A stretch of 64,000 nucleotides of DNA from Chlorokybus atmophyticus. Lineage: Eukaryota; Plantae; Mesostigma and Chlorokybus algae. The notes under the pieces are model-generated. The model was not told the origin of the DNA. It saw only the letters and a list, made by a program, of their open reading frames with translations, and ran no database searches. A program made the position numbers and the translations under genes. Location of the stretch: NCBI GenBank assembly GCA_009103225.1, contig RHPI01003079.1, forward strand, positions 176,029 through 240,028. The letters are read 5' to 3'. Of this stretch, positions 11,798 to 64,000 are shown piece by piece (the first letter of the stretch is position 1; each line of letters starts with the position of its first letter).

Positions 11798-12356
<559 letters not shown>

Positions 12357-22010: not shown

Positions 22011-22083
22011 AAGTCACAACACGTGAAGATTATTAAAGCAAGTCTCAAGTGCTAACTGCAAGAAGAAAGCAGGCGCGGCAAAG

Positions 22084-25965: not shown

Positions 25966-26023
25966 GTGAAAGAAGACCAAGCGTTGGAGGCCAAGCTGCC
26001 CGCGTGGGAGTGTTGAAGATATT

Positions 26024-37391: not shown

Positions 37392-37592
37392 TGTCATGCC
37401 TACTGCCCACGCATACCAGCCTTCATCGAGCATGTCTACATCGAAACCATCGCCCGGCCTACCAGCATACCGACGCGCGCGCGTCACTGACCAGTAGCTA
37501 GGTCATGACTCCAGAGTAGCTCACGACCATAGCCTACATAGGCACCGCGCGTAGCTGTTCGTTGTGAGTTTAGTTATAAGTTGTGTTATATA
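37392..37592 (+). repeat. G1 3' LTR, left part
   Basis: Matches 16029-16229; homology stops exactly at the E2 TIR. Confidence 0.9.
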
Positions 37593-40500
37593 CACACGGC
37601 TTAACGTTGAAGGACCATGCATGGTGCATTCACGGACCCCGCGGACCATGCAGGATCCGTACCCCACGGGCCAGGACTGCCTGGTCCGCGGGGGACGGAC
37701 CGTTCCTGGTCCATTTGGGGCCCCGCGGCCCGTGCATGGCTGGCGCGGCGACATGGTCCGTGCCGCACCATCCATGGTGCGGCACGGACCAGCAATGTAT
37801 GCTGGCCCTTGAATGCGGACCAGGTGCGGTCCCGCAGTCCTGTGGCCCTACTAGCACGCACCGTACATAGTGCCGTACGGTCCGCGCCGCACTATGTACG
37901 GTGCAGCACAAACCCGTGACCGCGGCCCTGCCGCTATCATGAGTAGGTAGCAACAACCTACGTAAGGTACAATAGATTGCCTAAATGATTGCACAAGTGC
38001 ACTTAACAGTCGGATCGCCCGACGGGTTCTCATCAAGCAAAATGGGCCTGCAAGGTCCCCCGCGACTCGCTGTGTGTCAGCGTGAGTCGAGCTGGGACGC
38101 GGTGGCTGTGGCTTGTCTTGTCCGCTGGGATGTGCCGGTCATGTGCTCGTTATGTCATTATGCTGCGACGCGGATGTGACGAGCCGGTCGCATTGCGTGT
38201 CGGAGCTCTTCGGGGTCGGTCTGCGCTGACATTCCGTGCCGCTGGCTCTTTGGGAGTGCGACGTGCGGTGACATTCCGCGTTTCGCCGCGCTCGGTTAGC
38301 ATACTATGTCGCGATGAGTCGGTTAGTGTTCACGGGGACCGTTGTGAACTAAGCGCCAGATTCAAATCGTTTGAAAACGTTTCGGTTGCTCTCCATGTTG
38401 AATGGAGTGTTGTTCGTGGGGGGCGGTGGCGGCGGTGGCGGCGGCGGCGGCGGCGGCGGCGGGTTCTGGGTTGTGGGTCCAGAGACATGTCCACGACGCC
38501 TAGTGTTTGGTCCAACCGCCCAGAAGTGGGTGGTTGTGTGTCACCTGATGGCACTCAGCATGACGACCTGCACAGGCAGAGGGGCGATGGTGATGCAGTG
38601 GGTGGAGGTGATGAGCGGGAGCAAGAGCATACCTCGCCGCCGCCAGGGGGGACTGCTCGCAAGCGCAAGGAGCCTGGTGAAAGGGTGGAAAGCGAAAGGG
38701 CCGAGGGGAAGAAGAAGTCAGCGAAGTCTGCACGTGAGAATCAAAAGGCCCAAATCGAGATATTGCGCCGTGACCTCAAGATTGAGGAGGTGCTGGGCGC
38801 AGCCAGAGTGTACACTCTAGCTCTCACCAGCGGCAGGTGCTGGGAGGTGGCGCCGGAGGGTCTGCGTATGCTGCCGGTGAGCAGTCTGGTTGGTAGCATC
38901 CATGCGTCAATGTATGGTTGAGACGTTGTGGGGCTGTGTGCATAAGTGACTGGCCATTGAATGAACGCTGATAGCGTGATGTGGTGGTTAGGGACTGCAT
39001 CCTGCCAAGTTGGAGGTCTCTGTGTCGGCGGTTGCGCTGCTGAGCCCTCCTATCGCAGTCGGTGATGGCCGACTCTACCGCCCAACTGCATGCTGCTCGA
39101 GGCCCACATGTCAGGGATGTTGCTCATGGTTGGTGATTTAAACTTAATTCTTGACCCAACGCATGGTGATTGCGGGTAGAGTCAAAGGAGTAGCTGTGCG
39201 TGCCTAACTGCGTTGTCGTGTAGTCAGACGCATGTACGCCAGGCCCCGGTCTTTGATCAGGAGAATCAGTGCTATGTGGACCATGACGGCAACATGTTGC
39301 GGCCGACGAGACGCACTTCCAATGTTGGGCTGCAGCCACCTCGATAGCCCAACATCAACATGTCGCAGTTCGACTTCTGAACGCCGGCGGGCACGATGGG
39401 GACAGCCTGGAAGACTTACCCATCTGCGTCGGTGGGGGGTGCGTCCCTCAACTTTGGATAGTTCATGCGGTTATGTGAGAGCGAACAGAGTCAGAGTAGC
39501 CCGTTTGCATGCTGACTTTGGCTTAATCGAGAGATGATTGGCAATGCAACAGGGTGGCCATTGCATGACTGCTTGATGCATGTGCGCATTATCTGATGAG
39601 GTGTGTCCCGTGTGTTGTAGGGCGTGTTTTAGGACGTAGGTCGTGCGGAGGTGTGTGCAAAGCTGCATTGTCTCAGGTTGGTTGCCAGTGTGCATAAGTT
39701 CGAAACAGCATTGGGTACTCGGATGTGCGGGAATTCTGAGTGTACTGTCCAGTATTGTGTTGTGCTGTGCGTGTGCCTGAGTGTACTGTGCGTGTGCCTG
39801 AGTGTACTGTGCATGTGCTGGGGTGTATTGTACTGTACCATAAGCTATGCTGCTACATATGCTCATGCACAAAAAAATTTAAAGACCGATGTTTTTTGTG
39901 CCAGATTCAAGCTGACTTAGCGACGCAAATGGCACTGGTTGCTGAGCTGCAAGAGCAGCTGCTGCTGGCGGTGGAGTTGGTCAGTAAACAGTGTGGTCGG
40001 GCTGACGCAGCCGAGGAGGAGCTGAGGGTGTTGTCTGCAGCGAGGACTAAGGAGCGTGCTGAGCGAGCAGGTCATATTCAGCGACTGGAGGCTCGTTCCA
40101 GGGATCTGCATGCACAGCGCACGGCTGTGCAGATCGGCATAGATGCGGCTGAGGGGAGCATTGTCACGATGTGCTAACAGGTGGAGAAATTAACCCACGA
40201 ATGTCGCAGCCTACAAGGGAGTCTGGTGTCAGAGAGGCGCAGCGTTTCGGCATTGCAAGAGCGTGTGTTGGAGCTGGAGTCCTTGTGGGAGAGGTGCGAT
40301 GCTCGTGCCTCTGAAGCGCAGCGCCTGCGTGCCGTGGTGGACGTGCAGTATATGGTAGTAGCTGAGGAAGCGCAGCAGTTGCGAGCACGTGCTGAAGTTC
40401 TGGAGGCGCGCCTGCGCACCGCTGAAGGCGACAGCGCTGAACACCAAGCAAATCTCTGGGATAGGCTGCTAGAAACTCAAGACGCCACAGCGCATGCACA

Positions 40501-41919
40501 GTCGGAGGTAGAGAGGGTTACCGCCCTATTTAGGGAGGCTGAGAGCGGAGCAGAGCAACTTGGCGAGCTGGTCGATGAGCAGCGGCAGCTGCTCAATGTC
40601 AGTCAAGAGTCAGCGCATTAGAGTCACGGGTGCGGTCATCTGATGCGGCCACAAGTGAGTTGCTGGCGAGGCATACGGCAGACATGCAGCGTGCGTCAGT
40701 GGCGAGAGAGCAAGCGCTGGTAGCTCTTTCCAGGGGGGTGGCCGCTGGTGGAAAAAGACTCCGCGTGCAGCGTGAAGACTTTGGTCAGTTGCTGTCAACA
40801 GCGCAGCAGGACCTTCGTGCATCAGTTACGGAGCTGGAGGCTAAGAGAAAACTGCTGCTGCAGTCACACGAGGCAACGCGTCAGCTGCAAGTGCATGCGC
40901 AAGGGTTGGAGGAGGAACTGGCGGAGGGCAAATGTGCTATGGCAGACCTGCAATTTTGCTGCAGTGATCTGGAGAGCAGGAAGTGTGCCTTGGAGGACGA
41001 GTTGGCCACTTGCACAAGGGCGAGGGAGGTCTCAATGCGACTGCTGGACGCCGAAGTGTCAGCCAACGCGCAGCTGACGCAGCAGTGCAACGATCTGGAT
41101 GAGCAGCACAGGTGGAAGGACTCTAAACTTTTGGAGTGGGGGCAGCGGTGCAGCTGCCTGGAATCTGATATCGAGGAGCTGAAAGAGTGCCTCGCACAAC
41201 AGGCGCATCATCTTGAGCAGCAGGCTGAAGCATTGCGCAAGCACACAACCAGCAGCAACTCGGCAGAGCAGCAAGCGCAACGGGGGCAGCACGAGGATCA
41301 CCTCAGAAGAGTGGCAGCCAGCGCAGGGTCTGGACCTGTGCACAAGGCGTTGGTGGCGATAGCCAAGCAGTTGATGTCTCCCGACTGTGTGGTCAACCTC
41401 AACGTGATCTGCGAACAGCATGGAGTCAGAGATGTGCGCCAATTGTACAATGTGTTGAAGGACTAGCATGCACATGTAGTTGAGACAAGCATAGACACAC
41501 AGAGACAGAGCTACCGCCACCAGAGCATACACAAGTCACATCACATTCATCTATTACAAGTTGTCCACTGGTTCTTATACCAGCCAGTTACACACACGTC
41601 TACGTTTGCAAGCACTGCGTAAGCTATACTCAGCCTTTTAACGCGCTCTAAGCTGCGTTGTCTTCCTTACAACCAGAGCTTTCCAACAAGCTCTTACACG
41701 TCTAGTATGAGTAAGTATACGTGGAGATACAAAGCAGTTAGTAAGGCTCCAGTCTGGAGTCCGGAGTCTGGTCCGACGACGCCATCTTGCTAAGTCCGGA
41801 CCTAGTGCTCGTCCTTACGACCTTCTACTCCGGTGTGGAGGGTCGATGCTGATTGTATTTAGGAATGACTCTCAACACTCCCACGCGAGCAGCTTGACCT
41901 CCAACGCTTGCTCCTGTAG

Positions 41920-44900
41920 TCAAACACAGATGCCAAGTCCTGCGCAACAAGTCTTGAACTTGAGCGGTGACAATGGCTTTGTCATGAAGTCCGCCAGCAT
42001 GCCCTCAGTGTTGCAGTACTGAAACTCCACCTCCTTCCCTGTGACTCTGTCACGCACAAAGTGATGCATGACATCAATGTGCTTCGTCCTTGCTGAGGCG
42101 ATAGGGTGCTTCAACAACTTGATGGCTCCTTGGTTGTCACAGTTGATGACGATGCACGCCATGGGGTGCTCTAAGTCTGCCATGAGCTTGCGAAGCCAGA
42201 GTGCCTCCTTCACTGCTGCTGCCGCTGCCATGTACTCAGCCTCTGATGTAGATGCTGCTGTTGTTGGCTGCAGCCTGCTGTTCCAGCTCACCACGCCTCC
42301 GTCAGCTTGAAGACGTAGCCTGTATTGGACCTCTTGCTGTTGAGGTCACCAGCAAAGTCCGAGTCGCAGTAGCCCTCCAACTCAGTGCTCCCGCTCCCAA
42401 ACTTGATGCCAACTGTTGCGCTCCCAGCAACATAGCGTAGTACTCCCTTTGCTGCGCTCCAGTGCTCCATGCTCGGTGCAGACATGTAGCGAGCAAGTAC
42501 TCCCACAGCATGTGCAACATTGGGACGTGTGCACACTGCCAGATAGAGCATGCTGCCTACCAGCTCACCATATGGATACTGAGCCTTGTCGAGTACCTCC
42601 TCATCCTTTGCCTTGATGAGGGCAGTGCCAAGTGCCAACGGTGTGGTCTTGGTCTTCGCTTCAGTGAGCCCGAACTTGGTGACGAGTCTGTTCACTTTCT
42701 GCTCCTGACTGATCTTGATTGTGCGTGCAGCCTTGTCGCGCTCAATCACCATGCCAAGGAACCACTTGGCCTCTCCAAGATCACGAACTGAGAATGCTTG
42801 ATGTAGAGCAAGTTTCGTCTCCTGCAGGTGGTGCACCTGCAGGGCGGTGATGATGATATCATCAACATATACGAGTAGCCAGACCTTGTTGTCTGCATAG
42901 ATGAAGAGCTCAGGGTCTGCAGAGGACGCGGTGAGGCCAAGTGCCTCCAGCTCCTTGGTGAGCTTGATGTGCCACATACGCGGTGCCTGTCGCAGCCCGT
43001 ACAGTGCCTTGATCAGCTTGCACGCTGTGCCTCTCTCCCCTTCTTCATATCCAGGTGGTTGCTCGATGAAGATCTCCTCCTCCAGCTCTCCGTAGAGGAA
43101 GGCAGTCTTCACATCCAGGTGATGCAGCTCTAAGTCTTCAGCAGCAACCATAGCTAGCAGTGCACGGAAGGTGGTATGCTTACTTGCAGGTGCAAACCCT
43201 TCGTTGGAGTCCACACCTTCCTGCTGCAAGAAGCCCTTTGCCACCAGTCTTGCCTTGTAGCGCTCAACGTTGCCCTGATCATCACGCTTCACCTTGAAGA
43301 CCCATTTCACTGGAATGGTCTTCATTCCTTACGGTAACTGCTCCAGTGACCAAGTGTTGTTGGCATGGAGTGACGCAATCTCCTCGTCCATAGCACGCTG
43401 CCATTACTCCGCATCTGGTGCTAACAATGCCTCCTCGTAGGTGCTTGGCTCCTCATTCTGCACACTGGCAACGAGTGCCTTGTGTAAGAAGTCAGGTGCC
43501 TTTCTCTCCCTCACTGGGTATCTCCGAGCTGCGTGCTTCTGCTGCAGGTGCGGCTCCTTCTGGCCTGCTACAACTGAATCTCGCTCACCCTTGTCATTGA
43601 TGACTGCCTCGCCCTCAGCCTCCACTGTCTTAGGATGCTCCTGTGGCTGTACTTCATCGTCATCTCAAGGAAAGAAGCCTGCTTCTGGTTGTGGTAATCC
43701 CTCGTGGAAAGCCACCTCTCTGCTCACAATGATCTTCTGAGTGTCCTCGAGCAAGATCCTGTAAGCCTTGAAACCCGGTTCATAGCCAACGAAGATGCCC
43801 TTTTTGTTGACCGGCTCCAGCTTGTGCCTGAGCTGTTTAGGCACTAGTGCATATGCCGTGCATCCAAGCACACGCATACCACTCACATCTGGTGTGGCTC
43901 CATAGAAGTGCTCCCACGGAGTCTTCTGCTCTGAGCTCACCGGAGACCTGTTGCGGATGTAGTTGGCAGTGAGTACCGCCTCCTTCCACAAACTGTCTTC
44001 CATTCTTGTGTCGTTGAGCATGGCTCGAACACGCTCTAAGAGTGTCCTGTTGAGGCGTTCTGCTGCTCCATTCTGCTGCGGGGTGTAGGGTGCCGTTGTC
44101 TCGTGGCGTATGCCCTTGCTGGCGAAGAACTCCTTCAACTCCTTGTTGATGTACTCCCCTCCTCGATCACTCCTCATTGCCTTCATCTTGTTGCCAAACT
44201 GGGTCTCCAACAAGGCCACAACTGTGCGCACAGCTCTAGCAACTTCTGACTTCAGTGTCAACGGAAAGATGACGGATAGCTTGCTGCAGTCGTCGAGGAA
44301 TGTAGCAAAGTACCTGACCCCTCCCTTCGCCACAATGCGCATAGGGCCACAGACATCCATGTGCACAAGCTCGCAAGGATGCTGACTGCTAGAAGTGTTG
44401 AAGGTATTACATGGGTGATGCTTGTATCCGGTCAGCTTGCCCTTCATACAGGAGTCGAGGGTCGAAGGTACCAGGAAGAAGCGCGTGGACTCCAGACTTA
44501 GCAAGACGGTCGAGTCATGACGGACTCCGGACCAGGCTGCTTGGTAGAGCCTTGGGAGAAATCGCGTAGCTTCGTGGATATGTAAGCTTAGCAAGCGTGG
44601 CTTAACTTGTTGGAAAGCTCTGGTTGTGAGCTAGACAGCGTAGCTTACAGAACAGCAATCGGCTGAGTATAGCGCACGCGGTGCTTGCCAATGTAGACGT
44701 GTGTAGAGACTGGCGGGGTATAAAGCCCAGATTTGTTGCAATGAAGATAAGAGGTCACGATGTAGCATGTGTGCGGATGCTATGGCAGCAGTAGCAGTCA
44801 TGCTCTTGTGTTGATGTTGTTGGCGTGTCACTTGCACGTGTGTATGTCAACAAGAAGAGGATGATGGGAATGGCATAGCATGCTGCTTTGCAACCAGGCA

Positions 44901-46273
44901 TGGTTCACAAAGTGCACCTAATGCATTCTTGAGTTCTTCTGTGCTGAGATGGATGCCCTTGACCATCTTCTCAGCGACAAGGCGAGTGAGGTTGACGTAG
45001 CTGAGATGCCCGAACCTTCGATGCCACAATGTTGGCGACTCCTTGTCCTTCATCACCATGGCTTGAATGTCAATGTCCTGAGGGTGCTGCTCCACGTGAT
45101 AGAGCCCTCCCGGATCAGCGATTCCAACCATGTGCACGACCCCATCAAGGATGACTGTGCAGCCACCCTTCCGAAATAGGATCTCCGCGCCTAAGCGCTC
45201 CGCAACCCTCACAGAGAATAGACTCGCAATAGCCTTAGGGACATGCATAACGTTGCGTAACAACACCTCGCGTAGTGTGTTACCAACCTTGCACTGGAGT
45301 CGTACGTTGCCAACTCCCTCGGCCACCAGTACTTCACCACCAAAGCCCGCCACCTTGATTGTGGACGTCAGCTTCCTGTAGCCCTCCATCACCTCTTGAT
45401 TTGGTGTGAGATCGCAGCCAGAGTCCACCACCCAGAAAGCTGTGCCCGCCTTCGAACTGGATGCAGTAAAGGCGACATGTTTCTCCTTGTGTTGGTGCTC
45501 GCTGCCGCTGTTGCTGGTGCTTGCTCTACGTTGCCCCTGTTGTTTCTTCCTACAGTCCTTGACAATGTGCCCCAACCACACCAGTGGCATGTGAGGTCTT
45601 TGTGACGAGGATTGCCTGGCTTGTTGCCCTTGTACTCCTCTTCATGGTTGCTCTTCTTTGCGTGCTTGCCTGCGTAGAAGGCGACGGCATCCGCTTGCTC
45701 GTCCTTCTTCACAACCCTCTGCTCTACGGTGAGCAGCTTCGGTAGCACATCGTCCAACGTCAACTCCGATGATGACGTCTGCAGCAAGGTTGCGACGACC
45801 TCGTGCTCTGCTGGTAGCCCTGCAACAATGGCCAACACTACCGCCGTCTCCCCCATGTTGTGGCCGACGTTGATGAGGTCCGCCCACAACGCTCTCGCGC
45901 GCGCAGCATACTTTGTGATGGGTTCTGCTGCCTCCTTCCTGAGTGCGCTCAGCTGCTTGCGTAGCTGCAATTTTCTGGCGTTGTTCTTGGCTTTGAAAAC
46001 GGCTGATAGCTTTTCCCAAGCTTGTCTACCATCTTCACATGCAGTGAGCATGGGAAAGTGATGCGGTTTGCTGTTCAACACAAGCAAAGAGTGTGCTTCC
46101 GCTGAATGCTCTGACCACACAGTGTTCGCTCCTGGTGTTGGTGGTGGTGCCTTCGGATCAACGTACTTCCGCACCTTCTTATGGATGAGCAAGGCCTTCA
46201 TCTCCACGCACCATGTGTTGTAGTTGTCGGTGTCCAGCTTTGCAATCTGCCCCTTGTCGTAGGTCGCCTCCAT
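41920..46273 (-). pseudogene. C2 gag-pol in fragments (gag, PR, IN, RT, RH)
   Basis: ORF pieces 46273-45389, 45590-44847, 44395-43665, 43625-43404, 43325-42288, 42294-41920, each closely matching the C1 protein. Confidence 0.95.
44396..44852 (+). mobile_element. Solo LTR (family L3) inserted in C2
   Basis: TGTTGAAGGTATTAC...TGTCAACA; AGAAG TSD. Confidence 0.95.
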
Positions 46274-48726
46274 CTCTGTCGTGCCTGCCTTTTCTTGCAG
46301 TTGACACCCAAGGCTCTGCTACTAACAAGCTACCGTAGTGTAGAACTACTAATGCACACAAGCTAGTCTCACACTCTTCAAGCGTAGTGTGGGCCCATAA
46401 CCCGTTGAAGGACTAGCATGCACATGTAGTTGAGGCAAGCATAGACACACAGAGACAGAGCTACCGCCACCAGAGCATACACAAGTCACATCACATTCAT
46501 CTATTACAAGTTGTCCGCTGGTTCTTATACCAGCCAGTTACACACACGTCTACGTTTGCAAGCACTGCGTAAGCTATACTCAGCCTTTTAACGCGCTCTA
46601 AGCTGCGTTGTCTTTCTTACAACCAGAGCATTCCAACAAGCTCTTACACGTCTAGTATGAGTAAGTATACGCGGAGATACAAAGCAGTTAGCAAGGCTCC
46701 AGTCTGGAGTCCGGAGTCTGGTCCAACGACGCCATCTTGCTAAGTCCGGACCTAGTGCTCGTCCTTACGACCTTCTACTCCTGTGTGGAGGGTCGATGCT
46801 GATCGTATGTAGGAATGACTCTCAACAGCGATCACGCAGAAAGCCAAGAGTGCAACCCGTGCATACACGAAACGTATGAGGGAAAAGGTTAGTAGTGAGA
46901 GTGCCTGCTGATGTGCAAGATATTCATAACGTAAGCGCTGTACGCAGATTCAGCTGCTCAAAGCTTTGGCAAAGCAAGGAGCCAACGAGTCCGCTTGCAC
47001 TGCGCAATACTCACCCATACCCTCTGCTCTGTTCACCGACGATGGGTTGATGAGAAAGGGCAACAAGTCGGCATTCTTGGCAGCACTTGTGCGTGCAGCT
47101 GAAGGTGCTGAGCGCCGCAGCTTCCCCCCTGGCGGCGAGTGCCTGATCTTGGAGGTGCATGTTCTTGATCAACAAGAACCCTCTCCCTCATGTCGGCACT
47201 ATACGTGAATATCTGGACCAGTTGCTCAAGACCTGCATCGTCCCTCGTCTACATAACCCGACACTACAGGCCCTGCATGTTGTCTTTGACGATCCTAAGC
47301 ATTCCACAGCAGTCAAGGCTGCATTGCAGGCGACCCGAGATGCAGGCTGTCAGAGGAGCAGCACAACTCTGGAACTCACCTCAGAAGTGCCAAAGGCATG
47401 GCGAAATCTGCTTGCTGATCGCAACCTGAAGCGGCGGCTATGCCACCTCTTTACTGCAGCCATCCCAGCGATGGCCGTCCCTCACATGCGTGAGGGACAA
47501 GAGGTCATCATTGCGGATGGTTCAGACACTGAGCCATGGGCGCATGCTGCGCGCAGAGTCCGCAGCGTGGATGGAAAGGCAGTCTACGACACTATGGACA
47601 CATACAGATGCAACCATGCCGAGGCCGACTCAAGAGTGTGGTACCATGCCAAGACGTGTGAGCAGAAGACACTCCTGATCTACTCACCCGACACGGATGT
47701 GTCGATCATAGGGCTGGCAGCTCTCGAGATGTGGGGCGAGGGTGACAAACAAGTGCATGTGCAGCTCAGCAGCAACGGGAGTGCCTCAACCAGAGCGCCC
47801 TTCATCAGCCTCAACGTGGTGTATCGTCACATGCAGAACATGGCACATGTACGTTACACAGCAAGAAACCAAGTGGCGCTGCAAGTCCTCATATTTTACG
47901 CGGTCACCGGGTGTGATTACACCAGCTACACAAGCGGCATTACCAAATTGTTCTACTGGCAACATGCCATGGGGAGGCAGCCAGAGTTCATATCGCCCGG
48001 TGGGCAACTCACTCGAGACAAAATGGTGCCCATGTTGCTGCGCTTGATTGGGTGCGCCTACTTTCACAAACACAAATCATCCTTCAGTCCCACCACATCT
48101 GCATCAGCTCTGTTCTACGACCTGAACGGTACGCGCGCATGCAAGGATGACACGCCAGCGCTGGAGGCATGGCTCGCCCTCATCAGGAGCAGTGCCTGGC
48201 CACACACGTGGGTCAACCTTGAGGACATGGCGTCTACTCAAGCGCTCACTTACCATTGCCAACGTAGCTTACGTTGGCAATGGTACGCCTGTGGGTTGTC
48301 GACATGTGGCTTCAGTGTTGCAGATCAGAAATGCAGCTGCCCAACCTTGCAGACAACGGTTTTGACGTGGTAGACGGCGTTGCTCACGCCATCATGGACA
48401 CCGCTGAGAACATGGCCGCTGCCAAGAGTCGCACCAACCAGCTGCTGCACGGATGCAGCTGCAAGAAGAATCAGTGCACCACCAAGATATGCAAATGCCG
48501 CAAGGAAGGCCAGCGCTGTTGCAGCAGGTGCTCATGCATAGGATGCACCAATTCAGCGGGCGGTCAGCCCACTCAAACACAACATCATGGTGCAGCACAG
48601 ACGGGCGCAGATGCACACAACAATCAGGCAGACGACCCTAGGTATGACTTACCAGCCAGCTCTGAATCTGACGACAGCGATGACGATGCCGACTGTAGTA
48701 ACTCGGAGGATGATCTGACGGATGCA

Positions 48727-49176
48727 TGTTGAAGGTATTACATGGGTGATGCTTGTATCCGGTCAGCTTGCCCTTCATACAGGAGTCGAGGGTCGAAGGT
48801 ACCAGGAAGAAGCGCGTGGACTTCAGACTTAGCAAGACGGTCGAGTCATGACGGAGCAGGCTGCTTGGTAGATCCTTGGGAGAAATCGCGTAGCTTCGTG
48901 GATACGTAAGCTTAGCAGGCGTGGCTTAGCTTGTTGGAAAGCTCTGGTTGTGAGCTAGACAGCGTGGCTTACAGAACAGCAATCGGCTGAGTATAGCGCA
49001 CGCGGTGCTTGCCAATGTAGACGTGTGTAGAGACTGGAGGGGTATAAAGCCCAGACTTGTTGCAATGAAGATGAGAGGTCACGATGTAGCATGTGTGCGG
49101 ATGCTATGGCGGCAGTAGTAGTCATGCTCTTGTGTTAATGTTGTTGGCGTGTCGCTTGCACGTGTGTATGTCAACA
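48727..49176 (+). mobile_element. Solo LTR (family L3) inserted in the acidic tail of A1 gene 1
   Basis: Near-identical to 44396-44852; ATGCA TSD; the reading frame resumes in frame when it is removed. Confidence 0.95.
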
Positions 49177-49284
49177 ATGCATGCTCTGACAAGGAAGGCG
49201 ATGAGGCCAACATTGTGGACGACAACAATATGGCTGATTGGTTGGACATAATCGAAGACTTGACTGTTCCTGAGGAGTAAAGCC

Positions 49285-51353: not shown

Positions 51354-51499
51354 TCCACTGCATTGTGGTTCATGCACTTATTGGTCTTAATCTTGCACAC
51401 ACATTGATAGCGCTGCAGTTGTTTAAAGTCACAATCTCGCTATATGACCTAGTGCGATGAAGACACGAGTCGACCAACGCATTTTGCATCTTCAACAGA

Positions 51500-52200
51500 T
51501 ACAATCTGCAACAGCACACACCATCACCCATTCACAATCTGTACACGTCCCCACATGCACTGCAGCCTCCTGAATTGTGGCATTTTCCAGTTCTCACCAT
51601 GCACAAGATCATTTACAACACCCAGGCCGCTGATACAATTCCAGCACAATGGCAAGTGGTCCAAGAGCCAGTGCACGTGCTGTAACTGCACCACTTTGTG
51701 TAATTTGCATTGCGCATGACAGCATGCATGGTTCAAGCTCTGCAAAAGCATTGCATTGCACACGCAAGTGTTCAAACTGCGCATGACCAATACACACACA
51801 GGCAAGGGTTCAAGGAGCCAGCTTACATGCTGCAACTGCACATGCATTGCATTACTTGGCATAGCGCATCCCAATATGCACTTGCAAGCTCTGCACAAGT
51901 CCGGCATTGCACACACCGCTGCCAAGAGCCAGGTGCACAGGGTCATAACTTCAAGCCTCGCAGTGGGACCTGCTGGTAGCGTAGAGCGCCGAGGTCGACA
52001 CGACCGATCCATCTAGGCTCAATCACACGACCCACTTGAAACAAGGCGAATTGCAATGCCGTCGGCATGGGCAACGCTGCCTGGGCAAGCGGCAGCGCCG
52101 ATGGCGGCGGCGGTCCATCTGCAGCGCTCACATCAGACGCACCATCGATAACAGGGACCGCAAGACTGCAATTAGAAGAATCCCCCGCAGACATAGCGCC
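51500..52200 (-). other. Possible third, convergent A1 gene remnant of unknown function
   Basis: ORF 52194-51943 plus exon-like pieces; same relative position as a minus-strand ORF cluster in A2; includes an imperfect about 150-bp tandem repeat at 51650-51940. Confidence 0.3.
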
Positions 52201-52919
52201 AAGAAGCTTACTCTCTCTTTCTGGTCCAACCCGCCGCCGCCGCCAACAACCACACCGCCCTGCTCATCCACCTCGCTGCCCCGCCCACACTCTTTAAGTC
52301 GTGCATGGTCGCGCCCAAACCACGAACTGTGACGAGGGTTCGTCGTGCCAAGACTCGCCGACATAACGCGACACCTTCCGCCACCCAGAACGCGGACTTC
52401 CAACGAAAGATGTCGACCTTGTGAGACTCTCAGCCGATCCCCACAACCACCGGCCTGCAATGTCCGGGCGTTTCACGGCAAGGTCGCTGGACAAGCCACA
52501 CCCAGTCAGAAAGCCAGAGGCCTTCCCTATGGCAGATTGCAGGAAATGGTTGGTCGAGATGGATGCTCGCGTCGTATGTAGGCCATGAGTAACGTGTGAG
52601 CATGGGTGAACTGGGGTAATCGACAGCCGTGGTCTCTGTAAGTTTATCGTTGATTGTCGGCGGTGTTGGTAAGGTGAACAGCGTAAGTTAACGACCGTTT
52701 ATGAGCGGTGTTGCATCAACGATCGACTGTGTGCGTTGTTGGTTGTCGTTTGCGGTCGCCGTTGCTCACGGCAAAGTATATCACTGTCGTCGATGCGGAG
52801 GCGCCGGTGTACCCTGATATCAGCTTATGCCAACGGTGGTAGTATTCGAATTTGCAAGTGCAGATGAGGCGGGGTGTTTGCAGTGTTGGCTGGGCTGTGT
52901 GTTGTGGGCGGTGGCGTCG

Positions 52920-55900
52920 ATGGCGGATGATGCTAGTCTAGCGTCGCTTTTTGAGGAGCAACGACAGAAGCTCGAGTTGATAGAGGCGGCGAGGAAGGGT
53001 CGCAATACAAGCCAGCGTGACTATGCCAGGCGTCGCCGTGAGGAAGATAAGAATTACATTCAGCAGCTGAAGGAAGAGTGTGGGCTGGTAAAGTCTTGGA
53101 TGCACGCAACTGGCGTGTTTCTGCATGCATTGACATGTGGGAAGACTTGGAGATGGCAAGGAGATAACCTTGTTTTGGTTCAGGTGCGTGTGGAGGGTGC
53201 TTCGTGTGTTCATGCGTGTGTATTGTGTGTATCGTGCATTGTCTCCACCTGTGACTGCGGTTTGATATGGCAGCTGATATGGACGAGAAGTGTTATGTGC
53301 TCGACATACTGACTTTGATGTATTGTGTGAGCAGGATACCTTGCCGACGCTTGGTGGTGCACCTCTTGGACTATGTGCGCAGGTGAGGTGCGGTTGCATG
53401 CTGCATGCTGCGTAGCACTGTAGTTGGCTGCAAACCCGTGCTCAATGGTGCATGTTGCAGGAGAATGATGTTGAATTGGCTCTGTCGTCGTCCGATGAGG
53501 AGGAAGATCAGGAGAACATCCATCAAGTACTTTCGCAGCGTAAGAAGCAGAAGCAGCATCATACGCCTCATCAGCAGCAAGTGCCACCAGCCTCTGCACT
53601 GCACCAGACACCGCATGGCAATGTGCGCCATGATTTGAATGGCAACCGTGTCGTGTTGGGACCGGCCATGTCTCGGTTGAACACAGCGAGAGGCGTACCT
53701 AAAACGCCCAAGACACCACTTGGCACCTTGCCAGGTGGGCGCTTAGCTTAGCCTGATTTGCTTTGCTAGGCGGTACCCTGAAAGACTATGAATCATGTGT
53801 AGTAGATGAGACGATGTTGTATACCTATTGCCTAAATGTGGATTTGAGAACTAGTTTCCACAGCTTGATGCATGTGTGTTGTGTGCCGACCAGGTTCGTC
53901 GTGCCAGCGTGCATGCGGATGATGCGTACAGGCAGACCCGTGTGTTCAGCCAGCTGGAGGTATAATGGGAGTGGGGGGCACGCAAACAAGTAAACATGCT
54001 GTGTAGTTGATCCTTCAATGCACAGTCATCTTGTCAGCAGCTTGTGCTAGGTTCGATGTATTGGCGTTCGATGTAGAAAATGGGGATGTGGTCTGTAAAT
54101 TTGCCAGGTATCCATACTCAAGTCACCATGTGGAATGGCAGAGTGGTATGAACGGGTGTCATTATAGTCTACATCACTATGTATGTAAGCACTTTTTCAA
54201 CGAGTCGGCAGATTGCGAAATAGGGGACTACAGCCATATGATAATATATGCTCTGAGCGCCCAACCACTGTGTCTATGCAGTCAGCGACTTTACAAGTTC
54301 AGAGTTTGAGGGCAGAGATGGCTTCAGTCAAGCAGGGGAGAGATCGTGTACAACGCGACTTGGATGCGGCGCTGGAGAGGCTGCGTGTCATGGAATCAAG
54401 CGGCAGCTCCAACACCAACAATGCCTTGCAGAATGCCTTGCTGGAGGTTCTGCAGTTGCGCACACAATGCGAGGTTGGTGTTGCCTAATCCTGTTTGTAT
54501 GATGTATGTGGTGTATGTTTGGGTTTGACTTACCTCTGGCTTGCATGGTGTAGAACTTGCGAGATCAGCTCACACGGAATGTATGTCAAGATGACCAACG
54601 TCGCGCAGAGTCTGCACGGGCTGTTGGGGAACTGGAAGAGGAGTTGGATGCAATGACCCTGCATGCCGAGGTGAGTGGGTGCACAACCTTGCATGCAATA
54701 TTATATTGACTATCAGAGGCCTCTATGTCCAGAAGTCGAACATATCACCAGGTGTTAGAGACCAGGGTGGGCGAGGAAGCGGACGCTTATAACGCTGAGA
54801 GGAGACACTGGCTGCAGGTGGAGTGCAATCTGTCAGGATACCGTGGCAAGTTAGTGGAGCTGGAGGACGTGATCGCTAGTCTACGTGAGACTGTGCGCAC
54901 AAACAGGGCGTGCCATCCATCGCAGCACGATGCACGTGTGGCGGACGAGGTGCGCCAGCTCTATGAGGACGATGTGCAGCGAGCAGCCAATGAGGACTGT
55001 CACGAATCTTTGGCATGCGCGGTGAGAGATGTTGCCTCCCAGTTGCTGCCGAGGGGTGCCGTTGTATTCCTGACTGCAGTAGCAGTCAAGTACAATATTA
55101 CACCTGCGCGTGTACTGCTGCGTGCTGTGAACCAGCGCTTACCGGGAGCGGGTGTGGTAGTGACCGGCGCCAGGCAACAGGGTACACTAATGATTGCTGC
55201 TTGGGCCGATCCTTTGGCATGCCTGTTGCGCCATGGGATGAGGGTTACTGAGGTGCCTGCCAGCACACAGCCAACTCGTACGGGTACCAGCGCGGTTGAT
55301 GGCGACCAACTGCCTGCTGCTGTACTTCGTCACCTGAACAGGGTTATGGAGGCGGAGAGGCAACGGCATGTCGAGCGCAACAGACAGGAGCCTGATCTGC
55401 GCTGCGTGAATTGGCAAGAGGAGTGGGAGAAATAATGAAATGAAATGAAATGAAATGCGGACCTGTAGTGCGACAGTTGTTTGGCACACTGACTGGCTAC
55501 AGTCAGATGGAGCGATTGCCATCTCCTGGTCCCGAACGGGCTCGTGCTTTAACAATCCTGCGCAATAAGACCGTGTTCCTGATGCACTGTGCATTGTATG
55601 CAAGGAGCAAGTTTGCATACTCTCTATTGCATCTGGCGGTCACGGACGAGGTGGACACACATTCTGAAGGGAACAAGTTAATCAGGACCCTCAACCGCCT
55701 GGGTGTGACAGTAAGCCGAAGCCACATCGATCGACACATACACACCAGGGCGCTTCACAATATGAACAGCATCGCTCGATTGCAGCCCCGACGTGGTATA
55801 CATGTGCTGGCATCGATTGATAATCTAAACATAAAGGCAGGCCACCAGGCACGCTACAAAGGCAGGAAAGCAGGAGACATCCATGCCACTTCAACTCAGC

Positions 55901-58900
55901 TTACCTCGACAGCCGCTCGGATGCCTCCAGAACAGCTGACTCTCGCAGGTGAGTTGTCAGCCCATGGTGATCAGGGAGACCAATTACTGCGAGTACAGGT
56001 CAGTCAAACCCGCATCTTGTGGGCAATCCATGTACTCATTGTTGGTGTTGTTGCAGCCATCGAGGAATCGCATGCTGGCAGAGTCACTGGTGGCTGAGCC
56101 GTGCGTCTACAATATGCCTCCTCCTGCGCCCATGCAGAGAGCACCAATTGTTGTGCGGAGTGACCCAATCTTGAATTTAATGCCTGAAGAGGTTGCGGCA
56201 CTGGAGAGTTCCAGAAATTGTTACACAATGCCGTGTTGATGCGCATGCAAGAGCCGGACCAAACAAGTTTGCCAACACTCAAGGAGGATTGGGCACGGTG
56301 GCTGCAACTGGCCACAGGCAGAAGCACTGAAGTTGCCAACGACATTGAATACCTGCTTGTGTTGCCTTTCTGCCCTGACAATATAGAGAACCTCAAGTTT
56401 GCGCTCTTGCAACTGCGCGCCAAGGTTGGCATCACGGATTCAACAAGCAAGATCTATGTTACTAGGAACCTGAAGACGTTTGCCCTGATGCAAGCACTAA
56501 AAAAGGCAGAGCCGGGCTACTGGGACTGGGTGGTGCCTTTCCCTGGCGATTTCCATGTCCTGATGAACATGCAGCCCGTTATTATGAAGATGGCCTGGGA
56601 CGCTGGTCTCGATGCTATGTCCTTGGAAGCCGGTTTTTCTGCAGCCATGGCACGCAATCATTTAGCAGACGGCTCTCATTGGAAGAAGATACACAATTTT
56701 CTGTGTAAAGTCTTGGAGGCACTGTACAGACATATGTTCAAGTTGTGGCAGCAGGCAGAAACCGCAGAAATCAAGAACTTGTGCAGAGCTGACCTGGAGG
56801 AGAACGGGATCAATGCCCCAAAGTCTGCTTCCTTCTTCCGCGAATGGTGCGAGGGTCAGTGCAAGACCGATCGTACCTGGCAGTTCTGGTGGAACTTCGT
56901 GAGCCGTGATATGCTGCATTACTTTCGGCTATTTTGTGGTGTTTCCCAGAAGATCTGGCATCTCCGACTGGCCAGCTGGAAGGGTCTGAGCCCGCTTCCA
57001 TTCGCCTGGGATCGCTACCATTATTAGAAAGTCATGACGCTGCATCTTGCAGACCTGCAGAGCATGCCGCGCTCTTTGCTGGATATGCTAGCCGAAGGTG
57101 GCTTTGCAGTCAGTCTAACAGGATCGGCTGGCAGACTGGTTGCTCTCGATGAAGCCCATGAGTGCCAGGTCAACAGAGATATGAAGATGTCACTGTGCAG
57201 GCCCACCACCGAGCAGCTCTGTCAGAAGTCATTGTACTTGGGGGAGCGCAGTCAAGCACACAAGCAACTAAAGCGTCAGCTACTGCTTGACAACAACCTG
57301 GTCAGCAACGAGCTGGATGATGACGCCGACGATGACCACGAGAGGGTAATGCGGACATTGGCTACCGACGCCGCCAGGTGTGGCAGCGATCTAACGCATC
57401 TTGTTGAGCTGCTGGAGGATACACAAGCCTTGGCAAGGCCACACGCGCTGCTCTTGACGCATCTTACCACCGGGATACCAGCGGCGGCTGCTGCTTCAGC
57501 AGATCTTGCGCAACACTACCAGGTTGGTGTTGAGGCCATGAAGTCGTTTGTGGAGGTTGACGTCTGCCGCGAGGCACCTGCGTGCAAAGTCAGTCGCAGA
57601 TTCAACTTGAAAACAATGGCACCTGCTAAGAAGCGCATGAGCAAACAGGCCACCGTGATCAAGCAGTACCGTCAAGAGATGTTGGTGGCCAAGCGCCTGG
57701 CTGCCAATGGTGCTAGTCAGGAGACCGTCACAGCAAGATACTGCGAGCATCCACGGGCGCTGTTTGAGGAGCTCACCGGCAAGATGCGGTCTAGCGACAA
57801 GGCCAAGTTGATGGCGCAGGTAGCTCCTCTCGACAACACATGCTGGAGCCGCATGTCCCCGCAGGGCGTGGAGTGCATCATCCTGGAAGGCATGTTCCTG
57901 ATTAATCAAGAATGCCACATGCTGCAAGGCACCATCAAGGACTATATCCAACACCTGATGCGCACCTGCGTGCTCAGCCGGCTCGCCAATCAGACCGTGC
58001 GCAGCGTGCAAGTTGTGTTTGACACTCCACGACTCCAAACGGGGGTCAAGTCTTCACTGCAATGCGCACGTGACGGTGCGGCGCAATCCTCTGGTGGTCG
58101 TCTAACTCTGGACACTTAGCTGCCGAGATTGTGGCGGGATGTGCTAAGAGATCGTAGCTTGAAGCGATCGCTGTGTGAACTGATAACAGAGCACATGCCC
58201 AACATGATTGCGGAGTACCTGCACCCCGACCAAGAGGTTGTATTCGCTGGCGGTTCAGATATAGACGAAGTTGGAGACCTTGCGCGTGTCGTGGCACGCG
58301 ATTCGGACAGCCCTGCACGCGTATATTTTGTAAACGACTATGTTTGTAACCATGGAGAAGCTGACTCTCGCGTCTGGGTGCATGCGCACAAATGCCCCTA
58401 CAACAACATCCTCATATACTCACCTGACCGATGTGACCATGATTGGCCTGGCGATCCCCGACGGGTGGGATGCAGTGTTGAAGGACGTCACAGTACAGGT
58501 GGCACATCACTCCAGTGGCTCCACTCGACCACCCTTCCTGCACTTGTCTACACTGGAACAACAAGTCAACAGCATGCACCAGGTGCAGAGCATCGCCACC
58601 GGGTTGCGTGGCTGGTGGCTTCTTCTGGTGTATGCAGAAACTGGTTGCGACTACACCTCATTCATTGGCGGCATCTCGAAACAGTTCATCTGGCGCAAGG
58701 TCCTGGCACAGCATGCAACATTCATCACCGGCAATGTTAGTGTAGTGGAACATGAGATGTGTTTCGCTATACTGCGCCTCATTGGGTGCTCTTACTTCGA
58801 GAAGTACAGGTCCAGCTTCCACAGCGGCACTCTTGCATCTCTGTACTTCGAGTTGCACGGGCCTGAATCAACCACCAGCGATAAGGGACGATTGGCAGAC

Positions 58901-59446
58901 TGGTTAGAGGCGATCCACAAAACAGTGTGGAAGAAGATTGCCACGCCACGAGATACCATGCCCACAGTCGATGCACTATGGCTGCATGCACTTCGCTCGG
59001 TGTATGCAGTGCAGATGTGGATGCAGAGCTGCAATGGTGACATGCACATGCCTGACTTGTCTGATTATGGTTTCACTGAGGTCGATGGGTTATGGACTGC
59101 TGTCAAAAATCTGCCAGAAAACATGGTGGAGGCGAAAGCTAGGAGGCAATTGCTGATGAAGGGTTGTGGATGCAAGACTAAACAATGTATCAGCAAGAGA
59201 TGCAAGTGTCGCAAGGCAGGACAAGCATGCACCGACAGCTGTTCGTGTTTGGGATGTGACAACCACGGCAATCACGTGGACGAGGACGCTAGTGCAGCTC
59301 CTAGTTGCCACACAACACCCCCCCCGCCCGTGGTCAACCCAACAGCCAAACAGTCAACACAGGCAATGGACAACGATTATCCAGATTCTGTCAACTCAGA
59401 CAGTGATGAGGAAGACCTCACCATGATGGATATGGACGACGTCTAG
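52920..59446 (+). pseudogene. A2 gene 1: coiled coil + putative Academ DDE transposase + XPG/FEN1-like nuclease + Cys8 finger
   Basis: ASIDNLNI, VTRNLKT (probably VTGDLKT), PFPGDFHVLMN, LDEAHECQVNRDMK; VQVVFDTP, CNHGEADSRVWVHA, SPD(T)DV, TGCDYTSFIGGISK; CGCKTKQCISKRCKCRKAGQACTDSCSCLGCDN; stops at 57025-57027 and 58117-58119, 2-bp deletion near 58428. Confidence 0.87.
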
Positions 59447-59546
59447 GGCGGCCTGCTACTCTCGCAGAAGGCGACGCGAGCAGCAAGTTCTACCATAGCC
59501 ACGCCCCACTGCACCTCACCCGACCCGCCCAACCTTCGGCAACCCA

Positions 59547-61535
59547 ATGTACTGCACCTGTCAACGCCGCCGCCACCGGCAGCATCCTCTTCCGCAACCT
59601 CCTCCGCAACCGCCGCCGCCTCCGCCGGATGCCCAAACCGCAGACACACAACCACATCAACATAAGGTGCCGGCACCGCCGCCGCCACCGGCAGCTTGCT
59701 CCCCCGCCTCTGCCTACACCGCCGCCCCCGCCAGCCTCGAGAAGAAATCTGTGCTGGCTGGTATGTAGCAAGCGCATTTTTTTAGGGTTTGCAACGCGTG
59801 TTTCTAGGGTAGTGCAGCTCAGCAACATGTGTGTTACATTGCAAGGCGGCGGAGTTGGCGGAGTGCGGTGGCACCAACACGGAGACGGCGGGCACGGTCA
59901 AGAAGGTCATGGTTTGTGACGTGTGCCATTCCTACGTCGTCAACAACGGTCAGCGTTCGCGCCTTCAGAAACATCAGGCTCAGTGCAAGGCGTACCAGGA
60001 GCGCTTTGAATACACTGCCGCATGCTGGCATCACCACGCTGCAGGTCATCACATCCTGCACTGCCGAGTGAAGCTTAGGTGTGCGCAACCAGTGTTTTTT
60101 AATATGCAATGCGCATGCCATCAGTGCGAAAGCTCTCTGTTTGAATGGCACGGCCTACCCATGCGATACATGCCTTACGTCCGCCCCACCACCATGATCG
60201 AAGGGATGCAATGCCGCCTGCTGGCGGTGAGTGGCACAGATGGCACTGATAATACTGCACGCATTTGTGCCAACACTAATACTGTATATACAACTTGTGC
60301 GCCAGGGCCAGCGCGCGTGCGCTGCGGACGCGGTGACGCGGTGACCGTTGTCATGCTGCCAGAGATAACGGCTGTTGCATCAGAATTCCTCGAGGTTGGT
60401 GTTTCAACGTGAACGTGCATCACACCTAGTGCATTACACAACAGCATTGTAATTGTGGACAACCAGACTGAACGAGAAGGAACCGATGCCGCCAGCGTGC
60501 TGCGCAAGCGTTGCGCGCGCGGGGATGATGCATTGGAGGGCCTCGATGTACTGGTGTACTGGCCGATGGACGAGACTTGGTATACCGGAGTCGTCTACAT
60601 TTACAACCCACGCAATGGTGAGTTATCACGGTCAAGAGCATTCACACGTGACACCGGCCATGGACTCAACGTAGCGCACTGCAATTGCAGGGCGCCACAG
60701 TGTGCGCTTTGTCGACGGCGACAAGCAGCATATGAAAATCGACAAGCACAACATGGTGGTTGTGTTCTGGCACCAAGGAGCTCAGTGTTGCCACCGCGTT
60801 GGTGGTCAGCGCGTACCCACTCACCGCAAGATCCCTCCGCCTCTGCCGTGTCTCCCGCTGTGGTCGTCATCAGCGCCATTGCTCAACGTTACCGGCGTTG
60901 ACATCAATCCACAGCCCGAGTACCCGTTCCCCTTCATACAAGCTGATGCCCTGGTAGTCGACCTGGCGCCATACGACCTGATTTGGGCTAGCCCCCCTTG
61001 CCAGGCATATGCCCGATGCATACCAGATTCACAACGTCACCAGCATTCCACACGGTGGAAGCACAGCACACTGCTGCCATCGCTGCGATTGCGCCTTCAT
61101 GAGTCAGGGAAGAACTACATCCTGGAGAACATACCAGATGCTGCATGTCACATGCAGCACAACATGGTGCTGTGCGGCACCATGTTTGGACTGCCAACCT
61201 TCCGGCACAGGCTTTTTGAGACACATCCCAAGATGGTAGCCGACCTGGTGTGCGACCATACGTCCAAGAGTCTAGGTCCACTGTCGGGTCATGTGTCCAG
61301 CACTGCCAGCCGCACACTGAACAGCACTACCCAGCAGATGTACCCCGTGTATGGCTCCGCTGCATCGCGCGGTACCATATCCGGCTGGCAGCAAGCATTA
61401 GGCATTGACTGGATTGATGCTGATGCCACACTCGTCGAATGCATTCCGCCTGCATACTCTGAGTATATTGGGCGGTGCATGTTGCAGGCAATGGGATACA
61501 CATTGAACAGCGGCCCCATATCATGGGGCCGCTGA
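59547..61535 (+). CDS. A2 gene 2: Cys/His domain, Tudor domain, C5 DNMT lacking motif I; start approximate
   Basis: Tudor VLVYWPMDETWYTGVVYIY|RHSVRFVDGD (intron 60618-60690); IWASPPCQ, YILENIP, FRHRLFE, ALGIDW, ECIPPAYSEYIG; open frame from the Tudor 3' exon to the stop. Confidence 0.88.
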
Positions 61536-61807
61536 GTATCAATCCGCATGTCTATTTGTGTTAGTTTACAAGTCAATTTGTACACTGGTGCACTTTGATT
61601 CTCAATGCACATTTCCAGGTCAATATATGGTTGCAACCTTGCATGACCACAACATTGCATTTGCGCTCAAACATCAACGTCAGTTTTCCACTGCCGCTCA
61701 CACACAGCACCAGACATCCTATCTGCACGCCCATGCCGGTCTAACTACACAATGTCACCGTCCAGTTGATGCGGAATAGGGGACATGCATACACTGCGCG
61801 CAGTCAC

Positions 61808-63113
61808 CTAGCGAGCAGACACACACGTTATGTACAAGTAGCTTGTTGCGTACAGTGCACACTGCCTAAGACAACACAGCTGCACTGGCATCCTCATTGC
61901 CCTCCTCGCTGGTGTCACACCCTGCCTGCGATGGAGTCTCTTTGTCGTATGCACCACACCACTGACCCCGTACTCGGACTGGTCAGAGTCAGAGTCAGTG
62001 TCGTCGTCCATGTCTCTGAACACCTGGGTGAGGTCGTCGTGAGCAAGCATCCATTCCACAGGCGTGAGTACATGTGACCCAGGCACACCATGATCAACAT
62101 CACCCATTTAGAAGCGTCTGCGTGTTATATACCCTACCTGTCAAGCACCCTGATCCATATGCCTGGCAGACTGAATCACCACTGTAACCGCAGCTTGCAC
62201 ATCGCATGCGACTCGCAACCCAGGCCATGCGCACGAGACAGATCACAACCCAGCTGGTCGGCATTCCAGTGCATATGCATACATCGATAAGGGGCAGAAT
62301 ACAACTGAGTCTCGTGACACAACACACACCCAATCAATATATACACGCACCACATTAATTACAGTTGCAACACACATACGTGCGCACATACCAGGGTCTG
62401 CAGGCACGACAGGATCCCAACCTCCACCGACAACTGCAGGGGGCGGGTGGGGCAAGTCAGGATTATCTGATTGGGCATCGTCGCCACCCTGCAATGGATG
62501 CATGCTCCACTAACCGATCTCAAACGGGCTCCAATCAGTGTCATGCCACTGCTCAAGCCAATGCCGTCGCCTTCCAGGTCCCACATCACAATCAGTGGCG
62601 ATCACCCAACGTGCCAGCACCACTCCACCCACCACATGCTCCAACACCAGCAGATCACTACTCAAACGCATTGGCCTGCCGCCTGCTCGTCGAACCCTAT
62701 GCAAGCTGTACCCAAACCCAAACCCACCCAAAAGCTCCACGTGCAGCTCCTTGACACCATCGCCAGACTGCACCCCTGATCTAGCAACCTGCAACGGCCA
62801 GCCTAGCAAAACCTACACAAGACCGGGGGACAATATCACATGCCACGCATCCGCCTATACAGAGACCAAAGCAGCACGAAGCTGCACAACGACAAATCAT
62901 GCACATTACTTAACGCTGACTCACCTGCTCGTATGCAGACTGGTAGAATGTGCTACTCCGATGTATATGAGGGAGTGCCCTGCTGTCAGCAATAGTAACT
63001 GCCAAGGGGATGTCGCCGCCCCCGCCGTCGACATCCATCACACCCACCCACCCAACGCAATCGCCGACCCCGCCGCCCACCAGCACCACCCGCCAAGCAA
63101 TGCCCCCATTCAC
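61808..63113 (-). other. Possible third, convergent A2 gene of unknown function
   Basis: Exon-like ORFs 63113-62910, 62809-62510, 62333-62100, 62107-61808 (acidic DMDDDTDSDSD); no recognised domain. Confidence 0.35.
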
Positions 63114-64000
63114 GACCGATATATCAACGCCAAACAGTAGTCAGCACGCTGATATCCACCGGACGGCGGCAACATTCACATCCGACCAACAGCGTCAACC
63201 GCCGTTTACTTAACAGCACCACACGCACCTTCCACCATGCAACAGCGTTAAACATCGCATGAACATGCGTGGACAACAGCGTTGTGTCGACCACTCAACA
63301 CGCTCAGCCGACGCTAATCGATCAGCGCAGACACTAGACAATGCACCGTTGATCACCCGATCAACTACAACCAGGTCAGCGGTGTCAATAAACGTTGCAA
63401 CACCGCCATCCCACGCGTCTCAGCAGACCAACACCAACAGCAGCCGCGCGCACAGCGCTGCCAGGCCTGGCATAAGCTTTGCCCGCCGAGAGGCCTCTGG
63501 CTTTCTGACTGCACCCGGTCGGCACGACACGACGCGACGCGAAAGCCTCGGACACCTGACCCCTAAATTATGTCGTGTCCACGAGGACACAGCGCGATAC
63601 ACATAGGCATCAGGCGTCATCACGCGGCCAAGGCTTGCTTGATGAATAGCAGTATATGACCCCTCGGGCGATCCGACTGTTAACGTGCACCGACTGTCGG
63701 GTATATACCCGTGGATAGCCGCAAATGGTCGGCGGCTGATTGACAGCCGGCCGGCTGTCAATGAAGCTGTAAGGGGCTTTGAATGCAATCAACATACTTC
63801 ATAGTACCGTACGTGTATTTGCCAAAATTTGTGGACATGCACCATTAACATGTTCTATGCGTTTATCTAAGTATCTACGTATACATGAACATTATATATT
63901 TGTATGCTTTAACGCAATATATATCACATATAATATATATATATATAATGTTAGCGTGTGCATAAATAAAATTAATTTATACGCATAGATGCGCAGGTTC

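Follow-up and report, generated by a model that had tools for sequence, protein, structure and literature searches.

Nested AcademX-like DNA transposons of Chlorokybus atmophyticus with a second gene for a predicted Tudor-linked C5 methyltransferase

We analysed a 64,000-nt window from the alga Chlorokybus atmophyticus (contig RHPI01003079.1, positions 176,029 to 240,028 of the forward strand); the window is the whole of this stretch, and coordinates are given within it. Its 3′ part holds two DNA transposons, referred to here as A and B, each bounded by terminal inverted repeats (TIRs) and a 4-bp target site duplication (TSD). Both carry sequences of a transposase-nuclease gene (gene 1) followed by a second gene (gene 2) which combines a Cys/His module, a predicted Tudor domain and a predicted cytosine C5 methyltransferase. 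The elements and their genes are as follows.

38007-63679, plus strand: element A, the outer, AcademX-like element; TIR CAGTCGGATCGCCCGACGGGT; TSD TTAA at 38003-38006 and 63680-63683
52503-63511, plus strand: element B, the inner element, within the 3′ part of A; perfect 21-nt TIR; TSD CACC at 52499-52502 and 63512-63515
54710-59443, plus strand: gene 1 of B, a pseudogene
54710-55432, plus strand: N-terminal piece of B gene 1
~55444-57400, plus strand: DUF6589 DDE-type core of B gene 1
~57690-58990, plus strand: predicted 5′-nuclease of B gene 1
~59160-59260, plus strand: CXC cluster of B gene 1
59909-61532, plus strand: gene 2 of B; Cys/His module to ~60370, Tudor exons at 60503-60617 and from 60691 onward, predicted methyltransferase to 61532
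46930-48729, plus strand: gene 1 remnant of A; predicted 5′-nuclease at 47147-48370, CXC cluster at 48268-48729, DDE core missing
49575-51350, plus strand: gene 2 of A; Cys/His module, Tudor and predicted C5 methyltransferase with motif I (DLFCGGGG)

Element A ends in a 25-nt TIR, complementary at 24 of its 25 positions and beginning with CAGTC, with TTAA at either flank. The 16-nt core of this TIR occurs twice in the window, once at each end of A. The TIR of B, CAGTCAGAAAGCCAGAGGCCT, matches at 21 of 21 positions and is flanked by CACC on either side. Two elements with CAGTC TIRs and a 4-bp TSD had been claimed in a first-pass annotation of this DNA, and both pairs of ends were found again; the two are not adjacent, B being nested inside A. 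B would be the younger insertion, into the 3′ end of an older A, and both would belong, as diverged members, to a single family of DNA transposons that move by cut-and-paste. We consider this probable, a judgement which applies jointly to our best explanation as a whole. Each subterminal region of B (52503-52900 and 63110-63511) further contains three copies of GTGTTGGT, in opposite orientation, as candidate transposase-binding repeats. The elements are not set apart by CpG depletion, with an observed/expected ratio of 0.76 against 0.77 in the rest of the window.

DNA-level likeness between A and B is confined to parts of gene 2, at 68-78%. Translated comparison, on the other hand, gave a colinear series of protein-level matches, in agreement with the earlier claim of colinear genes conserved as proteins despite heavy nucleotide divergence.

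Nuclease and CXC cluster: A 46960-48552 against B 57691-59263, 36-48% amino-acid identity
Cys/His module: A 49482-49946 against B 59795-60271, 45% amino-acid identity
Tudor and methylase: A 50218-51350 against B 60503-61526, 47-73% amino-acid identity

No counterpart of the B transposase core (55444-57690) was found in A by translated comparison, and A has no detectable DDE/DUF6589 core. The region of A upstream of the nuclease, as well as the junction between its two genes, is occupied by the following features.

38082-41452, plus strand: 5′ part of A with coiled-coil open reading frames (ORFs; 39950-41451); homology to B not demonstrable
41453-46827, minus strand: Copia long terminal repeat (LTR) retrotransposon lying within A, with LTRs of 424 nt that are 97.6% alike and differing flanks, CAATG and GCGAT
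44396-44853: solo LTR inside the Copia element, sister of the next; TG..CA ends, TSD AGAAG
48727-49177, plus strand: solo LTR at the end of A gene 1; TG..CA ends, TSD ATGCA

The Copia element encodes gag, integrase and RVT_2, and lies where the A transposase core would be expected. Its unmatched flanks suggest a recombination between two insertions in which the DNA between them, including the transposase core of A, was removed. A second Copia copy is present at 21315-26666 and is 72-80% like this one. The two solo LTRs are 95% alike, and about 118 nt are common to them and the Copia LTR (75-80%, inverted). The coiled-coil 5′ part of A was compared with the N-terminal piece of B; the score of 46 was not significant, shuffled sequences having a mean of 39.6 (sd 6.1). 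Thus, of the anatomy first attributed to gene 1 in both elements, the DDE core, nuclease and Cys cluster stand for B, while A is without the DDE core; the coiled coil, thought to be a common part, is present as ORFs in A but has no significant homology to the N-terminus of B.

Within gene 1 of B, Pfam detected DUF6589 at 56188-57024 (1.7e-6). A TCR/CXC domain with 9-10 cysteines was detected in both A and B (5.3e-6 and 7.4e-5). The nuclease pieces gave no Pfam XPG_N/XPG_I match and no phmmer match in the PDB, and were resolved by fold search alone. The conserved segment 47147-48370 of A, modelled with AlphaFold (pLDDT 79.6), matched only XRN1/2, FEN1, T5 exonuclease and GEN1, with Z between 6.9 and 10.8; an unrelated structure came next, at Z 4.8. 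This model identifies the segment as a predicted 5′-nuclease of the FEN1/XPG/XRN superfamily, within which the fold cannot separate XPG from FEN1 or XRN. In the family alignment six acidic residues are near-invariant and form a putative active site (D48, E159, D161, D182, D184 and D257). An exhaustive search with the same A piece retrieved 405 relatives, with named hosts including Antedon (crinoid), Branchiostoma (amphioxus), Mytilus (mussels) and Holothuria (sea cucumber). In a scan of ten of the long relatives (1250-2250 amino acids), DUF6589 preceded the matched nuclease segment in nine, and a weak TCR/CXC match was seen in four. TIRs were also looked for on the metagenomic contig L004, which carries a relative, and none was convincing.

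The DUF6589 core was modelled on one of these relatives, P0121 (pLDDT 79.1). The model aligned over 355 residues with the P element transposase (Z 12.9), and also matched Hermes (Z ~11) and ISCth4 (Z 8). The P0121 core is thereby predicted to be a DDE transposase of the RNase-H fold, into which an alpha-helical segment is inserted. Conserved core motifs are SxDNxD, GDGKT, PFPGDWH and DEAHE. The B core keeps the candidate D, D and E, and three otherwise invariant positions are changed.

The AcademX lineage of the Academ superfamily (Kapitonov and Jurka 2010; Kojima 2020), as outlined in PMC10045372 and PMC5751038, has TIRs and a single large protein in which a DDE transposase is combined with an XPG-like nuclease and a Cys cluster; a TSD of 3-4 bp is given in PMC10045372. 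The Academ core was without a Pfam model in 2017 (PMC5751038), and we infer that DUF6589 corresponds to it. Gene 1 and the 4-bp TSDs fit the published outline, an assignment which is based on architecture, folds and TSD length. The AcademX-type parts first claimed for gene 1 were indeed recovered, namely a DDE-type core (in B), an XPG/FEN-like nuclease, a Cys cluster and the 4-bp TSD.

Gene 2 lies inside the TIRs in both A and B, in the same orientation as gene 1 and ~0.4 kb downstream of it, so that the proposal of a Cys/His-Tudor-C5 methyltransferase gene within both elements was borne out. Its most upstream part, the Cys/His module, is conserved between A and B; a search for its family returned none, with generic zinc-finger look-alikes only, all below 0.9. 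Tudor exon 1 matched the PDS5C Tudor bound to monomethylated histone H3 lysine 4 (H3K4me1; PDB 7de9) at 2.6e-4, over the first half of the domain. The Tudor sequence as predicted after splicing shows the W/Y positions of a candidate aromatic cage; the one Pfam match, to Tudor_KDM3B, was weak (0.0034). A predicted GT-AG intron splits the Tudor domain at the same codon in both elements (50333-50410 in A, 60618-60690 in B). Methylase motifs are found in canonical order in A: motif I DLFCGGGG, IV SPPCK, VI ILENIP, VIII FQHRVFE and, in the C-terminal part, IPP CIPPAYSEY. The catalytic motifs PC, ENI and RxR are kept in both copies. The Pfam PF00145 model gave no direct match to the gene 2 pieces of the window, nor did phmmer with the B methylase against the PDB, and a family profile was needed. 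From its sequence, gene 2 encodes a predicted small C5 DNA methyltransferase.

The B ORF 60675-61532 yielded 2790 homologues. Small bacterial and phage PF00145 enzymes (~210 amino acids) were matched at up to 1e-37, with 40-43% identity to the B methylase, and in IMG/VR at least 458 phage-sized contigs encode relatives of this short form. The best matches (to 9e-54) were enzymes of 300-350 amino acids with a methyl-CpG-binding domain (MBD) in the variable region. In a small tree, the window methylase was sister to this MBD-DNMT group with support of 96/92. Contigs carrying MBD-DNMTs are compact and intron-free, encode kinases, topoisomerase II and a PLOD-type glycosyltransferase/2OG oxygenase gene, and look giant-virus-like by their gene content. 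Two of the MBD-inserted small C5 methyltransferases are located at 8803-9858 on contig L001 and 2028-3050 on contig L003; this compact design, reading and writing 5-methylcytosine (5mC), looks undescribed in its own right.

Selection on gene 2 was evaluated by codon comparison between A and B. Across the methylase, identity is 0.78-0.94 at codon position 2 and 0.34-0.42 at position 3; for A against B as a whole, third positions are near random (0.33-0.44). Non-synonymous divergence (dN) is 0.26, and synonymous divergence (dS) is saturated and allows no estimate. With synonymous sites saturated and dN low, the A and B lineages must have diverged for long as working genes under purifying selection. 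The DNMT cargo has been under long purifying selection, consistent with the constraint originally supposed for gene 2.

Both present copies are pseudogenes and neither is functional. Element A is dead, having lost its transposase core and received three nested insertions, with a 1-nt frameshift near 50772 and a TGA at 51114, both in gene 2. In B, gene 1 contains TAG stops at 57025 and 58117 and a frame change near 58426, and gene 2 lacks 36 codons, including motif I, at 60883/60886. For comparison, we used contigs from two public runs, X1 and X2, which contain B at roughly 96-99% identity. At the motif-I gap the X1 contig has 110 letters where the window has 2. At the position of the 58117 stop, GAG is present in both X1 and X2. 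X2 holds two extra letters near 58426, and hence no frameshift, but has its own stop at 58036. Judged from these contigs, B appears to have been intact at insertion with respect to motif I and positions 58117 and 58426. Since some B lesions are absent from the run contigs and recent changes look neutral, the B lesions would be private and B would now be decaying neutrally.

Taken together, these results suggest the following course of events. Gene 1 would give one large protein, composed of an RNase-H-fold DDE transposase, then a FEN1/XPG/XRN-type 5′-nuclease, then a CXC zinc cluster, and would insert the element by cut-and-paste with a 4-bp duplication. Gene 2 would give a reader-writer enzyme made of the Cys/His module, a PDS5C-type Tudor and a small C5 methyltransferase, which may have arisen when a Tudor of the host lineage was captured with its intron and joined to a virus-derived methylase. 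The product could then be recruited to transcribed chromatin that carries H3K4me1, among it active copies of the element itself, and write 5mC there. That the family encodes an active, chromatin-guided de novo methyltransferase of this kind, built from a giant-virus/phage methylase and a host H3K4me1 Tudor and writing 5mC on its own or host chromatin, is a tentative proposal which we think has a rather smaller chance of being right than wrong. As to the purpose of such cargo, self-limitation or gene-like marking, letting the family persist at low cost, is a possibility to which we give only limited credence; transposition coupled to replication via hemimethylated ends and marking of host chromatin are open alternatives.

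Several observations weigh against our best explanation as a whole. The complete two-gene layout is shown in the window by B alone, because A is without a transposase core. Within the length limits applied, the protein collection yielded no fusion of a Tudor domain to a DNMT, P0307 and P0308 being double methylases in tandem, and none of the gene 1 relatives found in other organisms contained or adjoined a methylase. On both these accounts, documentation of the trait is confined to this genome. Comparison of the window with the two runs gave 19 non-synonymous and 6 synonymous differences, which looks neutral. Finally, the best matches of the methylase family profile among solved structures are the tRNA-methylating DNMT2/TRDMT1 (6e-7), ahead of Dcm (3e-5) and M.HhaI (2.5e-3).

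The lack of gene 2 among gene 1 relatives outside this genome would be expected if the Tudor-methylase gene were an independent module, either a host gene or separately mobile, which tends to adjoin transposase genes. The position of gene 2 argues otherwise, as it is found within the TIRs of both elements with the same orientation and spacing. Moreover, the divergence of gene 2 parallels that of gene 1, with 45-73% amino-acid identity for either gene and saturation at silent sites. We regard an independent module as unlikely, and as the most serious of the competing explanations.

The DNMT2/TRDMT1 matches raise the question of whether the gene 2 enzyme methylates RNA (tRNA) in a DNMT2-like manner rather than DNA. 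Against this, members of the family are common in phages and bear the annotation of DNA cytosine methylases, the closest relatives contain a domain that binds methyl-CpG DNA, and in these elements the enzyme is joined to a predicted histone reader. RNA as the substrate thus seems improbable to us. Somewhat more doubtful still is a captured, decaying passenger without a role for the element, comparable to the gene fragments carried by Pack-MULEs. The broken state of both copies and the neutral recent substitutions would agree with it; on the other side, second codon positions of the methylase were kept over the A-B divergence while third positions were randomised, PC, ENI and RxR persist in both copies, and some of the B lesions are absent from the run contigs.

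The least probable explanation, which we give very little weight, takes the whole 38-64 kb region as one 27.5-kb composite of two tandem units with CACTA-like ends and a 3-bp TSD: a GGWCC-rich repeat beginning with CACACGG at ~37593 does lie just outside A, and its partner end would fall beyond the window, but A and B each have their own TIR and 4-bp TSD and behave as two ordinary nested insertions, the outer repeat being best read as a third, unrelated element and the target of A. This repeat, at 37507-38006, contains 11 GGWCC sites against 0.9 expected. It resembles 5623-5934, in inverted orientation, at 75% and lies next to a copy of 16027-16231 at 96%; A probably inserted here into the end of a different transposon. 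GGWCC-packed ends were also considered for A and B themselves and ruled out, with 0-3 sites per 500 nt at their ends, the enrichment lying outside A.

Elsewhere in the window, a further transposon-borne C5 methyltransferase ORF is present on the minus strand at 32107-33000 (PF00145, 3.4e-12), at a position unrelated to the Academ-like elements. A tandem array with ~50-nt spacing and self-matches of 91-98% extends over 11773-12353, with a diverged 100-nt relative 2.3 kb downstream, at 14570-14670.

Cytosine methylation is the main weapon of hosts against transposons, and elements with a methylase of their own reverse the relation between host and element in this defence. If the family encodes an active chromatin-guided methylase, the transposon would be a writer of the host epigenome and not merely its target. 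An intact and active copy would provide a compact natural enzyme converting a histone mark into DNA methylation, and would make it possible to test directly whether an element is helped or held back by the methylation that it encodes. The occurrence of the nearest methylases, which bear an MBD, on giant-virus-like contigs points to reader-writer methylases moving between algal viruses and transposons.

Other transposable elements with enzymes of this kind have been described. DNMT-carrying retrotransposons (KnitGypsy-Dnmt3, SymbioLINE-Dnmt and SymbioDIRS-Dnmt3) are known from dinoflagellates and Klebsormidium (PMC5890265), and there are also DNA transposons that carry TET/JBP or SET genes (PMC12730594). 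DNA transposons encoding DNMT in marine viruses are cited in PMC5890265. The combination was presented in the first-pass annotation as new, and in the literature we found no paper on an Academ-type, or on any cellular TIR transposon, with a Tudor-C5 methylase; the broader notion that no DNA transposon carries a DNMT gives way to the marine-virus cases. A C5 methylase coupled to a reader within a TIR transposon would add an independent instance, distinct in enzyme lineage as well as in reader.

Compared with AcademX, the elements described here share the one-protein transposase with XPG-like nuclease and Cys cluster, the TIRs and a TSD within 3-4 bp (4 bp, twice). They differ in holding a second gene (Cys/His-Tudor-C5 methyltransferase) inside the TIRs, and so depart from the single-gene definition, and in having predicted introns in their genes. 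With the motif VxVYWPxDxxWYxG ... VxFxDGD, the predicted Tudor domain resembles, over its first half, the Tudor of plant PDS5C/RDM15 and MSH6 (PDB 7de9; bioRxiv 10.1101/2022.05.28.493846). Here, in contrast, it is joined to a methyltransferase inside a transposon, and reading of H3K4me1 by it is a prediction. The MBD-inserted C5 methyltransferases (P0001, P0003-P0006; L001, L003) are the closest methylase sequences, with 42-48% identity, a common CDHxxxSLG and QMFPVYG insert, a common LGYTLDYPP tail and the same reader-plus-writer logic. Their reader is an MBD placed in the variable region, whereas in the transposon enzyme the variable region is short and the Cys/His module and predicted Tudor are N-terminal.

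The DNMT retrotransposons (PMC5890265) likewise have a transposon-borne C5 methyltransferase under purifying selection. They are class I elements, with a DNMT of Dnmt3 type or an orphan one encoded within ORF1 or the Pol polyprotein, in contrast to the class II TIR elements studied here, with a separate gene, predicted to be spliced, and a small methylase of phage/giant-virus type linked to a predicted Tudor. The fungal TET/JBP DNA transposons (PMC12730594; Iyer et al. 2014) combine a DDE transposon with a separate gene for an enzyme of cytosine methylation. Their enzymes oxidise 5mC and act against silencing, whereas the enzyme predicted here would write it.

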